From NCBI GenBank assembly GCA_001949185.1, contig BDGG01000001.1, positions 3,427,324 to 3,491,323 on the forward strand: a DNA stretch of 64,000 nt, given 5' to 3'. Each line of letters opens with the position of its first letter. Position 1 is the first letter of the stretch. The position numbers and the translations under genes were made by a program. Of this stretch, positions 36,830-44,607 are shown in pieces. The DNA comes from Ramazzottius varieornatus. Lineage: Eukaryota > Animalia > Tardigrada. The notes under the pieces were generated by a model. It searched no databases and had not been told where the DNA came from. It saw only the letters and a list, made by a program, of their open reading frames with translations.

Positions 36830-37664
36830 AGTCGAGTGATACGAATTTCATGAATAATGAATATTCAGATGCATGTGTGGCTGCTTTTTTTCTGGTGCGA
36901 GAGTTTTTTACTATCCATAGTAGCAACAGTGATATTTGACATGACTAATAGCTCAAATAAAACGTGCACAAAAAACGGCTGTTTGACGAAGAGGCGTTTG
37001 TGGGTGCGGGCTTTCGGAAGAAACAACTGGCCAAGCGGAACCCTCGCCTTTGTTGAAAGTCATCGATATGCAGCGCTGTGCAAGCAGACCCCTCACAACC
37101 TCATAATGCCCGCATTCTTTGAACGAGAAAAAAGTCAGTCGAGCAGCGTAAACATGGTGGCATGTGAGAAGAATTGTTCCAAGACAATAGCGAAAATCTG
37201 CCAGGAAAAAGTTGGTAGCACCTATTGGGGTCTAAGTTACCGTACGTACGCGGTTGGGTTGATAGCTTATGACGGAGAGTTCCGAGTCAGAACCTGTTAA
37301 GTATTCTCCGGTCGATGAGCCATCGATCATTTTGAGATACTTGCTTTTAGCGCATTTGTCAACTGTTTTGTTTGTCCTCAGTAGCAGTTTTTGACAGATA
37401 CTTCGTTCTAAACCATTCAGCCACAGATCTGCCATTCGATCGACCAGATTTTGTTTATTTTTTGCGGTGAGTCGTGTAATTTGCCCAGTTACTCAAAACG
37501 GTCAAGATCAACATCCGGGTCCGTATGATACTATTGATACAAGTACTTTTTCACCATCGATACCTCAGGAATTTACCAACTTGATGGAGTTTTCTATTGC
37601 TCTAATAACCCTTTTCGTCAATATATTTTAGGATCTTAGATTGATCGAAGATCGCAGTCCAAAA

Positions 37665-38460
37665 ATGGAGACGATTACTTTGATGATTACCGCAATACTC
37701 GGTATGGCTACGGCACAACAGATTGGCACTTCGGCCCCGAAAGATTGCCCACTAGGATGGACGAGGATTCGGAATAGCTGCTATCTCACCGGGGAACGTT
37801 TCAATGGGTAATTTTAGGAAATGTCAACATCGCACTTTCCGGCAGTAATTTTCAATATAATCAAACCTTTTCGAGACGCCGAACTCAAGACTTGATTCCT
37901 GTTTGCCTCCATGCAGACAAACGTGGTACTCTGCTGCCGCCTTCTGCCAGAGCCTGGGAGCACATCTCATCGAGATAAACGACATGGAGGAATTCCATTA
38001 CGCGGACGCTGCAGGTACAATAATACAAGAATCCTTTGATCCTCAGCTCTCAAACCAGGGAACCAAAGAATGCGTTCGCGGTTCTAAATGTAAGGAACAA
38101 GTATCAAACGATGATTTTATTCGCAGCGAAACAAGTCGGCTGGGTGGACGGGCCTTGGCTCGGAATACTGCGTCCTTTTGGTGACAACCGTTGGGTTCTT
38201 CCTTCACTGCGCAGCGAGTCTGTGGATAACGACTTTAACAAACGTAAGCTCGGATGCATCATTTAACCTGCTACTGAACTACCAGTTTAATACTTGTACT
38301 ACACCTTACAGTGATGGAAGATATCGCACAAGGCAGTTCTCACGATTGCGGCGGGATGGACAAGCGAGGAAAATTGTTTGGATTCTGGAGATGTCGAAAT
38401 GGAGGTTCCCCGTGGTGTGAAATCGACCTTCAAGTCCAATCGAATCAAATAGCTACCTAA
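37665..38460 (+). CDS. Secreted C-type lectin-like domain protein B, 4 exons, paralog of lectin A
   Basis: METITLMITAILGMATA..CPLGWTRIRNSCYL..|QTWYSAAAFCQSLGAHLIEIND..|..GPWLGILRPF..|..CGGMDKRGKLFGFWRCRNGGSPWCEIDL. Confidence 0.88.
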
Positions 38461-39014: not shown

Positions 39015-39835
39015 CACCCTACGTTGGATCGGGAAGCGGAAGTTGGCCGGAACTACCACCTCTGGCTACTCAACCTGATCCGTGTCAGGGAACTCCTTGC
39101 CTGAACAACGGATACTGTTACCCTCCGGGCCGATCCTGGCTTCGATAACGCAAAAATGATCTACGAATGCCAGCCGAGTTTCGTAGGCGATCACCGTCAG
39201 TTCCAAGATCCATGCACGGTGGAACCTTTGCAACCGCGTCGCTCCTCTAACAAAAGAAGCTGAAGGGCGGTTATCCCCCGTGCAAACGAAACCGCGGATG
39301 TGGATTCGGTTCAGCCGAGCTATGAGTGTTTTTGCGAACGTGGGATATCTTGGTCCTAACTGTACTACAGTCAACTGAATTCTCGCGGCGGTCAGGGGCG
39401 TGGTAACTCAGTATCCGTAACTTGCAATACGGGTACGCATGTGAGTGTCGGAAGGGATATCGCTCATTAGGATGCAACATCGATATTGACGAATGCACTA
39501 TCCAAGAACCCTGTGCTAACGTTCATATCAATGCAGTCGCTGTATCTGCCAAAACAGATTCAGAGTTGAAAGTGTATCGAACTCCATGGTTCATGTGCGG
39601 AGAACCCCTGCAAGAACGGTGGTCGCTGCCAACCCGGTTCCGCTGCGAACTTTCCCGACTACTAAGTGCAATGTGCTTGAGGATACTCGGGAAGTCATTG
39701 CGAAGTCAACAGCGACAACATGCTTGTCAGAATGGTGAGATCTGTCGAGGTCAGGTAAACGGATACACTTGCGAGTGTGGAGGACAGTAAGGGGTACGTA
39801 CAGTATGGAGGACAGTACTGTGCAGAAGAGATCGT
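39015..39835 (+). pseudogene. Degenerate copy of the 6-EGF gene at 41456-42343
   Basis: Collinear fragments DPCQGTPCLNNGYCY, FVGDHRQFQDPC, GYLGPNCTTV, YACECRKGYRSLGCNIDIDECTIQEPCAN, CAENPCKNGGRC, ACQNGEICRGQVNGYTCEC, broken by frameshifts and stops. Confidence 0.88.
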
Positions 39836-40325: not shown

Positions 40326-40480
40326 TACCGCACTTTTACGAAAAAGGAGACGAGAAGAGAGGGAATTATGGCGATCCGTAGCAGTGAAAGTTCGGTCTTC
40401 ACGGAAGCAGATACCGATGCGAAGACTGGAGCGTTTGGCTTGACGTCTGTCGGCAGCACTGGATTCGCCACTTCGGTTAA
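40326..40480 (-). pseudogene. Remnant of the chitinase last exon (duplicated tail)
   Basis: Translates to KPNAPVFASVSASVKTELSLLRIAIIPSLLVSFFVKVR*, versus chitinase KPVAPVVASASAKTGLSQLQLFMVPSLIVIPFFLKL*. DNA match GTGAAAGT(T/C)CGGTCTT..CGGAAGCAGAT with about 42580-42610. Confidence 0.75.
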
Positions 40481-41455: not shown

Positions 41456-42343
41456 ATGGCGCGTTCCTTAATTACGCTCGTAATTTTAGTATTGAGCATT
41501 GGACAAACTTCCCCTTCGACCCGCCCGATGGGATCTGAGAGCCGGCTCGGACTACCTTTGCCGACTGCGGAGTCTGATTCATGCCAGGAAAGTCCTTGCT
41601 TCAACGGCGGACGCTGTTATTCTCCAGGAATAAACGACGCAATGCTGGCCTGTGACTGCCGCCCTGGGTTCGTTGGCAATCACTGCCAGTTCCGCGATCC
41701 CTGTGTAATACAGCCGCGTCGTTGCTCCAACGGAGGGACTTGCCGAGCTGTCTTTCTGGCTCTGAACGGAACAACAAGTTCGGATTCGGTCGAGCCCACG
41801 TTTGAGTGCCTATGTAAACGCGGATATCTTGGTCCTAACTGTACAACGGTCGATTTTTGTGCTGCATATCCTTGCGACTGCCAAGGACACAGCAACTCTG
41901 TATGCCGGAATTTGGAGAACGGTTACGCTTGTGAATGTCGGAAAGGATATCGCGGGCTGTGGTGTAACATCGACATTGACGAATGCACGCTTGAAGAGCC
42001 CTGCGCTAACGGAGGAACCTGCATCAACACGATCGGCTCTTATCGCTGCGTTTGCCGAAATGGCTTTAAAGGACAAAAGTGTACCGAAGTACACGTTCCG
42101 TGCGCGGAGAACCCCTGCCAGAATGGCGGTCGCTGCCACCCCGGTTCCAGTGTGAGCTTTCCCGACTTTTGTGAATGTGCCTCAGGATTCTCCGGAAGTC
42201 ATTGCGAAGTGAATATTGACGACTGTATCGACAATGCTTGTCAGAATGGCGGGACATGCCAAGATCAAGTCAATGGATACACCTGCCAATGTTCAAGACC
42301 TTACGGAGGGCGTTACTGCAATGAAGAGATCGGATACGAGTGA
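41456..42343 (+). CDS. Intronless secreted protein of six Notch-like EGF repeats
   Basis: Signal MARSLITLVILVLSIGQTSP; six EGF modules including Ca-binding type DIDEC and NIDDC; stop directly after the last repeat; no TM, DSL, LNR or ankyrin region. Confidence 0.9.
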   Translation: MARSLITLVILVLSIGQTSPSTRPMGSESRLGLPLPTAESDSCQESPCFNGGRCYSPGINDAMLACDCRPGFVGNHCQFRDPCVIQPRRCSNGGTCRAVFLALNGTTSSDSVEPTFECLCKRGYLGPNCTTVDFCAAYPCDCQGHSNSVCRNLENGYACECRKGYRGLWCNIDIDECTLEEPCANGGTCINTIGSYRCVCRNGFKGQKCTEVHVPCAENPCQNGGRCHPGSSVSFPDFCECASGFSGSHCEVNIDDCIDNACQNGGTCQDQVNGYTCQCSRPYGGRYCNEEIGYE

Positions 42344-42521: not shown

Positions 42522-44607
42522 TCACAGTTTCAGAAAAAAGGGAATGACAATCAAAGAAGGCACCATGAATAGTTGCAGCTGTGAAAGTCCGGTCTTGGCG
42601 GAAGCAGATGCAACGACTGGGGCAACTGGTTTGACGTATGGTGGCGCCACCGGTTTGGGTGGCAATGTTGGAATGACGTTAGGTCGGCCAAGAATCTCAC
42701 TCACTGATTTCAGCAGCGGGAACTTTGGTCCGCAGTAGCCTTGCAAGTCGTCTGAGCCGATGTGCCAAATGAATACACCTTGCAGTCTGTTATTCTGCGC
42801 CCATTGCACCTACGAGCATAGAGAACACATATTCATGAATAAAATCGAAAAGTAGGACATCGGCACCAAACTCGGCAAGATTATTTACTCGACTGGCGCA
42901 TGCTTCCAGCCAAAAACACCGAAAACGTACACCACTTGGGAAAACAACCTTGTTGGGTTTGCTCCTCTAGCTACAAAAACTGGCGACAAATGTACAAACC
43001 TTTTTCTCGAGACTTTGGCTATCGTCATAGCTGACCCACTGATTTCCGAAGAAAGCGTAAGGCGTATGTGTTACCGGGTCCATCTTCCGGGTCCAGCCAG
43101 CTTTCAGGCCGCTGCAGATCTCGCCATACGACAGCGTACCATTCTCGTGAGTGAGGAATCCGCCAGTCCCGACACCCAGGGCGGAATTACCTACGCGTTC
43201 GGTACGGTTTTCTACTTCGGGAGTAGACAGGGTCCAGGTTCGTCCATAAAAGGCCAAACCCATTGAAAGACTTTCCCGCGGAACACCGGCGGCTATCCAG
43301 TCCAGCATAGATTTCTCCTGTGATATTCAGCATGCTCACTTAAACGTGTAACCTCGCGAAATGCCGACAATGATGACTGTGATCTTACCACATCGGGGAA
43401 GCCCGCGTTAGATCCCGTCTTGAGAAGTTCGGCTCCCCACATTCCGTGATAGTCGTAAGTCATTACATTGATACAATCCAAGTACCTGCAACCACAAGTT
43501 CACACCGGTCTACAACAGCCACAGAACTCAAAAGTACAGTCGTTTACTCGGTTATGCAAGTCTTATTTTCTGTGTGGGTCTCAACGCACTTGGCCATTTC
43601 CGCTGCTTTGTAGCCGGGACGAACGGTGTTTCCCACTGCAGCTGTTAGAATCAACCTCGGTCTTTTAGTTCTTTCTGCATCTGCGACAATGGCTGCTTTC
43701 AGGTCCTAAAAAAGAAAAGAACGTATGATGGTCAAAGTTACGGCTCCTGGTGTGCTGATATTCAAAATTAAAAATATTAATATTATTTTCCATATTCAAA
43801 TATTATTGCATATATTCCATATTCAAAATATTACGGCATGTCAGTTGCTTTATCTGAGTCAAAAAGAGTTCCGGTTTCTCAATAAGAACAAGATGACAGC
43901 CGTGTACGGTATGCATTGCTGCACGCAATTATGAAGGCCTCCGGCATACACACAGAATTAGGAGTGTCAAACTTGACGGTTTGAGTTTCCGTACCTGAAG
44001 CAAGGACAGGTAGTCCTGAGCATTCTCCGGTTCAGGATATTCCCAATCGATGTCCACACCATCGAAGCTCCACTTTCGGAGGTCCGCCACAATGGACGCG
44101 GCGAACAGGGAGCGGCTTGCACCATTCTTTGCCATTGCGACGAACTCATCGCTGTTGTTCCATCCACCCACGCTAAGGACCAACTTCAGCTCTGGATTTA
44201 TTTCTTTGAGACTGTACAACTGAGCAAAATGTCCTGTAGAAAAAGGCCAAGAGCTCAAACATAAGAACGTTCACACAGTAAAGTAAGCTGAGCTGTTTTA
44301 CGGACCTCGATACTTATTTCCGTCTGGTGGCGATATTCTGGTCTGGTTGACGTTGAAGAAGGCATAGACGATAATATCGCATGGTCCGTAGGGATTGATG
44401 TCCGCCACTTTGAAAGGATTGTACATTCCGTTGTTCAAGGTCCATCCAGGAAGATAACATTGGACCTCGAATTTACCTGTGGACGAAAACGAGTCACATT
44501 ATGCCGACATTGCCATCTTGATGTAAGATACATTACATATATTTTACCTTCAACGACAACCCCACAGAAACCGGCAAGCAGGAGCAGAATAAGATGGCGC
44601 AAACCCA
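42522..44607 (-). CDS. GH18 chitinase with hydrophobic (GPI-like) C-terminus
   Basis: Signal MGLRHLILLLLAGFCGVVVE; CDIIVYAF; LKLVLSVGGW; catalytic FDGVDIDWEYP; INVMTYDYHG; MGLAFYGRTWTL; LSYGEIC; WVSYDD; GVFIW. Confidence 0.93.
42890..42950. repeat. Copy of the GTGGCGCAC palindromic family (chitinase last intron)
   Basis: TGGCGCATGCTTCCAGCCAAAAACACCGAAAACGTACACCACTTGGGAAAAC. Confidence 0.65.

Follow-up and report, generated by a model that had tools for sequence, protein, structure and literature searches.

We found that a 64-kb stretch of the Ramazzottius varieornatus genome (contig 1, positions 3427324-3491323; hereafter the window, in whose numbering gene positions are given) carries a single-exon gene, which probably encodes a soluble protein of about 29 kDa with six EGF repeats. 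The gene belongs to a small family seen only in Ramazzottius, which probably goes back to an ancient duplication of part of Notch, namely its 5′ EGF-coding region. The likeness to Notch is real over four repeats, although it is not proof of origin or function. The features discussed below are collected in Table 1.

Translation of the plus strand gave 295 uninterrupted codons followed by TGA, within an enclosing open frame of 333 codons in which the first ATG is that of the gene. Strong hydrophobicity was confined to residues 1-19, with a 12-residue core after Met-Ala-Arg, so that the signal peptide was called from hydrophobic 12-mers only and not with a dedicated predictor. The Pfam search returned EGF families only, namely EGF (PF00008; E-value 1.4e-28, 99.2 bits, cut-off 21.5), hEGF (PF12661; 1.3e-20, 73.5 bits, cut-off 29.3) and, on residues 173-207, EGF_CA (PF07645; 1.6e-10, 41.5 bits, cut-off 27), while the cysteine spacing resolved six EGF units. 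The mature part carries 37 cysteines, of which 36 are canonical positions, all kept, and one is the extra Cys140 of EGF3. Reading the translation, we identified the C2-x4-T-C3 O-fucose consensus in EGF2, EGF4 and EGF6, and the calcium-binding consensus in EGF4 and EGF6. These results bear out the original prediction in its description of the gene: a signal peptide, six EGF repeats and a stop within 888 bp without an intron, three repeats with the O-fucose consensus, and no repeats corresponding to the ligand-binding EGF11-12 pair, since the protein consists of six repeats only. No LNR, NOD, transmembrane or ankyrin part follows EGF6, where the protein ends, and Pfam gave no match to the DSL (PF01414) and MNNL (PF07657) domains of DSL ligands. 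The AlphaFold single-sequence model of the protein reached a mean pLDDT of only 38.5. Cys140 and Cys142 of EGF3 lie at window positions 41873-41881, and EGF3 of the paralogue described below has six cysteines; as a speculation, the odd cysteine, as a free thiol, could permit disulfide-linked dimers.

Table 1. Features of the six-EGF gene and its surroundings (window numbering).
Feature	Position	Strand	Basis
Complete CDS, 295 codons and TGA, intronless	41456..42343	+	ORF; Pfam EGF families only; purifying selection versus paralogue
N-terminus resembling a signal peptide (residues 1-19), probably cleaved near residue 16-19	41456..41512	+	Hydrophobicity
EGF1, residues 43-77, not calcium-binding	41582..41686	+	Cysteine pattern; no stable tree placement
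EGF2, residues 83-129, long C3-C4 loop, O-fucose consensus	41702..41842	+	Cysteine pattern; two registers versus tardigrade Notch
EGF3, residues 135-170, seven cysteines (extra Cys140)	41858..41965	+	Tree, weakly with windows of Notch EGF4-5 (57/78)
EGF4, residues 177-209, with O-fucose consensus, of calcium-binding type; corresponds to Notch EGF5	41984..42082	+	Pfam EGF_CA; tree 99/97
EGF5, residues 216-250, not calcium-binding, without O-fucose site, counterpart of Notch EGF6	42101..42205	+	Sequence comparison, tree
EGF6, residues 257-288, with O-fucose consensus, of calcium-binding type; resembles Notch EGF7 or SVEP1	42224..42319	+	Tree 62/88, 55/85
Decayed tandem copy, matching query residues 26-292	39032..39833	+	Several frameshifts, seven stops, about 71% nucleotide identity
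Decayed copy of GH18 gene 3′ end, same tandem duplication	40349..40465		Repeat family D4; blastn
GH18 chitinase-like gene, convergent with the EGF gene, interrupted by short introns	42522..44258	-	ORF pieces; Pfam Glyco_hydro_18

The protein deposited for this locus (NCBI/UniRef) has 233 aa and starts at Met63, so that the signal peptide and the first half of EGF1 (41456-41641) are missing from what looks like an N-terminally truncated public gene model. The 295-codon ORF is the better gene model, because its N-terminal extension is conserved in the paralogue and is evolving under constraint.

We then compared the members of the family, which has three copies in the R. varieornatus genome. Besides the intact window gene, these are a decayed tandem copy 2.4 kb upstream of it and a distant paralogue at the RvY_00075 locus (contig 1, 202298-203136, minus strand). 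In the paralogue, the two halves are out of frame because 9 bp and 1 bp have been deleted between EGF2 and EGF3, and the deposited RvY_00075 model fuses the C-terminal half to unrelated upstream exons, its N-terminus being a Gly/Pro-rich segment; this copy may have been re-modelled, may be a pseudogene, or may reflect a mistake in the assembly. Between the window gene and the paralogue, dN/dS was 0.09 in the C-terminal half (164 codons) and 0.30 in the N-terminal half (96 codons), at dS of 1.2-1.3, and the two stops lie at most three codons apart. Because of these ratios, the high dS and the nearly common stop, we conclude that the window gene is old, is subject to purifying selection and does not extend past the end of the ORF. 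A recent duplication was ruled out by dS above 1 between the paralogues. The later spread of the family was DNA-based, because the tandem duplication carried along part of the neighbouring GH18 gene, as reflected by the blastn match of 42577-42656 to 40380-40465 at 72% (the GH18 3′ end and its decayed copy). Outside Ramazzottius, neither the protein databases nor the metagenome scan yielded an orthologue or any relative closer than generic EGF proteins: with residues 1-150 as the query, the protein library returned the window's own protein as the sole match, and the metagenome scan returned one generic EGF locus at 34% identity.

Two readings would deny the ORF the status of a functional gene of its own, and we consider both very unlikely. 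The ORF might be one exon of a larger gene, for example of a membrane protein, with the stop bypassed by splicing; a weak GT site does overlap the last codons, another lies 12 bp past the stop, and the deposited RvY_00075 model joins its C-terminal half to other exons. Against this, the stop position has been held in common with the paralogue to within three codons despite dS above 1, the ORF begins with a Met and signal peptide of its own, 178 bp separate its stop from that of the convergent GH18 gene, and the 64-kb window contains no further EGF-coding sequence matching the query except the decayed copy. Alternatively, the ORF might be recently silenced or never expressed, that is, a pseudogene intact by chance, in line with the damage to two of the three family copies and with the odd cysteine number. 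An open frame of 888 bp with all 36 canonical cysteines, and dN/dS of 0.09-0.30 at such a dS, argue otherwise. Taken together, these results support a real stand-alone gene for an EGF-only protein, which is predicted from its N-terminus to be secreted.

The surroundings of the gene were also inspected. Three pieces of the GH18 gene were confirmed by Pfam, covering different parts of the profile, and a fourth is C-terminal; at its end, a Pro-rich linker is followed by a hydrophobic C-terminal tail that may serve as a membrane or GPI anchor. ORF pieces on the plus strand at 37641-38266 gave a weak C-type lectin match (E-value 0.0037, below the Pfam cut-off). The EGF gene, the GH18 gene and the C-type-lectin-like pieces look like a small neighbourhood of secreted-protein genes.

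To place the six repeats, the Notch gene of R. varieornatus was located through LNR and NOD matches on contig 15 (about 1105200-1113660, minus strand). In the genome profile search, LNR matches fell on contigs 15 and 6, and the NOD match on contig 15 only. The contig 6 match (333984-334486, plus strand) consists of two Notch-type LNR repeats, with no NOD match and, in the six-frame reading, no EGF array nearby, and appears to be a non-Notch LNR protein. Six-frame reading of the Notch locus showed about 15-16 EGF repeats followed by LNR, NOD, a transmembrane segment and ankyrin repeats. Fly Notch and vertebrate NOTCH1 have 36 EGF repeats, and the tardigrade number is thus far below theirs. One intron of the tardigrade gene lies in EGF1, just before the fifth cysteine, with the likely first coding exons about 2.8 kb upstream, and a phase-1 intron lies within a Gly codon of EGF5; an exon of about 850 bp runs intron-free from EGF5 to EGF12. 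Moreover, we identified a very large SVEP1-like gene on contig 7 (about 879000-891000, minus strand), in which sushi modules, many EGF repeats and cysteine-rich repeats were seen by eye, and a Delta-like EGF array on contig 11 with typical first two repeats. Genes of the O-fucosyltransferase family, Notch and the Delta-like gene were all found in the genome. When the transmembrane-ankyrin exon of tardigrade Notch was used to query a library of 1.84 billion proteins, the 150 matches listed were all ankyrin-repeat proteins, none of them with EGF arrays.

Several lines of evidence connect the protein with the N-terminal part of Notch. The database matches best by identity and coverage were N-terminal Notch fragments, EGF1 to EGF7, from fish, sea spider and lizard (38-42% identity over 81-86% of the query). 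Within the genome, two collinear matches to tardigrade Notch exons, at residues 115-204 and 197-292, scored 73 and 78 bits; the next gene after their sum was the SVEP1-like locus with 94.5 bits at 49% identity, a match that spans residues 166-289 only. Among solved structures, human NOTCH1 EGF4-7 was the best single stretch (118.7 bits), ahead of other Notch fragments (at most 97 bits), EGF11-13 fragments (at most 83) and DLL1 (82). On a profile built from three Notch N-terminal fragments, the six-EGF protein scored 170.5 bits (profile positions 69-243) and the tardigrade Notch exon 169.2, but generic EGF arrays reached 155-160 bits on the same profile, which leaves the six-EGF protein a margin of only about 10 bits. 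The nearest ESM Atlas cluster contained a 274-aa form named 'notch homolog 2' (score 0.92), which we take as a lead only.

The careful maximum-likelihood tree of 110 two-repeat windows, on which our conclusions rest because quick two-window trees were mostly unresolved, placed family EGF4-5 with Notch EGF5-6 of fish and sea spider at 99/97 (paired values are bootstrap and SH-aLRT), although a nine-EGF protein (P0007) fell inside this clade too. Family EGF3-4 grouped weakly with Notch EGF4-5 (57/78). The comparison pool consisted of proteins of 162-516 aa, too short a range for complete Crumbs, Serrate, SVEP1 and comparable proteins from other animals, and the tree lacks tardigrade Notch EGF1 and EGF5, both split by introns in the unspliced Notch model. 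In the comparison of repeat junctions, the EGF2/EGF3 junction of the family found the tardigrade Notch EGF3/4 junction second among 1071, with three further Notch N-terminal-type fragments in the top ten. In addition, family EGF4-6 show the O-fucose series yes/no/yes and the calcium-binding pattern of tardigrade Notch EGF5-7.

Other results blur this picture. The original prediction had the repeats collinear with Notch EGF1-7; we found EGF3-6 in register with Notch EGF4-7, strongly only at EGF4-5, whereas neither trees nor linker comparison assigned EGF1 and EGF2 to Notch EGF1-3, and the EGF1-2 and EGF2-3 windows joined no Notch window in the 110-window tree. The idea that Notch EGF2 and EGF3 had collapsed into one repeat fits an alignment of EGF2 to tardigrade Notch in two registers, with its head and long loop resembling Notch EGF2 and its tail and linker resembling Notch EGF3, so that EGF2 is possibly a hybrid of the two. 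An AU test found a grouping of EGF2-3 with Notch EGF3-4 compatible with the data (p 0.32), which does not demonstrate a clade and is no proof of the collapse. Family EGF5-6 had the SVEP1-like pair as its sister (62/88); the surrounding clade, itself weak (55/85), also includes Notch EGF6-7 together with one Crumbs-like and one Eys pair. The scores of family EGF5-6 were close, 242 against the SVEP1-like pair and 238 against Notch. Identity to tardigrade Notch was 37-42%, no closer than to fish Notch2-like sequences. Best matches of single repeats were spread over many EGF proteins, and those of junctions over fibropellin-, Delta-, Jagged- and unnamed EGF proteins, and neither comparison discriminates.

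These observations lend some weight to a different history, in which the protein is a lineage-specific secreted matrix or adhesion protein whose likeness to Notch reflects constraints shared by hEGF and calcium-binding EGF repeats, or an origin from some other EGF-rich gene, for example the SVEP1-like one on contig 7. We regard this as possible, if less probable than a Notch origin. It would account for the dispersed matches, for the SVEP1-like locus being both the best single non-family match in the genome and sister to EGF5-6, for the generic arrays that come so near on the Notch profile, and for the two unplaced N-terminal repeats; the other secreted-type genes nearby, GH18 and the weak C-type-lectin-like match, also suit it. 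It does not readily explain the 99/97 clade with Notch EGF5-6, the summed collinear Notch match exceeding the SVEP1-like match, which is moreover confined to the C-terminal part, or the lead of human NOTCH1 EGF4-7 over all other solved EGF arrays. On balance, the sequence comparisons tilt modestly towards a Notch origin of the family.

The mode of such a duplication was then considered. Both Notch introns that fall in this region, those of EGF1 and EGF5 (phase 1, Gly codon), are missing from the window gene and from the paralogue; the loss of two parental introns fits a processed copy and equally fits intron loss. The original prediction had taken the lack of introns as notable in itself and had suggested a retroposed copy. 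We rejected intronlessness as evidence in its own right, because tardigrade Notch itself has the intron-free exon of about 850 bp, next to which 888 bp without an intron is unremarkable. Classical retrocopies retain the 3′ end of their parent. The window gene corresponds to the 5′ end of Notch, and downstream of its stop there is no A-tract, nor is there any other trace of retroposition at the gene, although the age of the family would have wiped out poly-A and target-site traces anyway. Classical retroposition was therefore rejected, on the 5′ coverage of the parent and the lack of any positive trace.

Based on the above results, we propose that the family was probably founded by an old duplication of the 5′ EGF-coding part of Notch. 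Family EGF3-6 would then derive from Notch EGF4-7, an N-terminal repeat would have disappeared or been fused, and the two introns of the parent would have been lost. The product would enter the secretory pathway, bind calcium at EGF4 and EGF6, and be O-fucosylated at three sites, and would leave the cell as a soluble, rod-like glycoprotein built from six EGF domains with disulfide bonds. Because it has no membrane anchor, no LNR/NOD part and no EGF11-12, the six-EGF protein cannot be a receptor and cannot itself signal. If it behaves like NOTCH2NL and engineered Notch decoys, it would act outside the cell, its EGF repeats binding those of partners in the Notch pathway or the matrix; binding to Notch-pathway EGF proteins and a generic role in matrix or adhesion may be about equally likely. 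Any effect on Notch signalling would be pure analogy. We consider it rather unlikely that tardigrades independently evolved a soluble decoy from Notch N-terminal EGFs that has long been under selection and would tune Notch/Delta from outside the cell. Were that so, it would be a second and much older solution of the NOTCH2NL type, in an animal whose Notch is reduced to about 15-16 EGF repeats. If both the Notch origin and a signalling role hold, truncated secreted Notch fragments would be shown to be capable of arising more than once and persisting as regulators, and not to be just a recent human peculiarity; Notch signalling in tardigrades, with their much shortened receptor, would also become more accessible to study. 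The practical gains are a corrected gene model, the description of a three-copy family and a real four-repeat likeness to Notch.

Human NOTCH2NL arose a few million years ago by DNA-level duplication of NOTCH2 exons 1-4; it keeps introns and promoter, is nearly identical to its parent and has an intron-derived tail. Its product can be found outside the cell as a secreted protein, co-precipitates with NOTCH2 and increases the activity of a reporter (Fiddes et al., bioRxiv 10.1101/221226). The tardigrade protein shares with it the short length, N-terminal-type EGF repeats, the lack of transmembrane and intracellular parts, O-fucose sites and possible secretion; NOTCH2NL has a signal peptide in its long forms, and the tardigrade protein has a signal-peptide-like start. 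The parallel with NOTCH2NL drawn in the original prediction thus holds for architecture, that is, a signal peptide (by hydrophobicity) and six EGF repeats without an anchor, and fails for age, the tardigrade gene being an old copy. Unlike NOTCH2NL, it shows dS of about 1.3 between paralogues, is 37-42% identical to its presumed parent, is intronless, and lacks one N-terminal repeat, its first two repeats being untraceable to Notch; the signalling effect of NOTCH2NL was measured, whereas the tardigrade protein is known from sequence alone. Compared with tardigrade Notch, EGF3-6 of the window gene stand in register with EGF4-7 and the last three share the calcium-binding and O-fucose pattern, while the long EGF array, LNR, NOD, transmembrane and ankyrin parts and the introns in EGF1 and EGF5 of the receptor gene are all missing. 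The SVEP1-like gene resembles the window gene in one EGF pair, with the likeness limited to the last two and a half repeats, but it is very large and combines many domains, among them sushi modules. Fibropellins and DLK1, which are among the database matches, also combine hEGF and calcium-binding EGF arrays with a signal peptide, but they differ in repeat number, carry additional domains or are anchored in the membrane. None of them runs collinear with the six-EGF protein over its full length, and in identity and coverage they fall behind the Notch N-terminal fragments. The protein, of a small family seen only in Ramazzottius, thus adds to the known small secreted EGF-repeat proteins.
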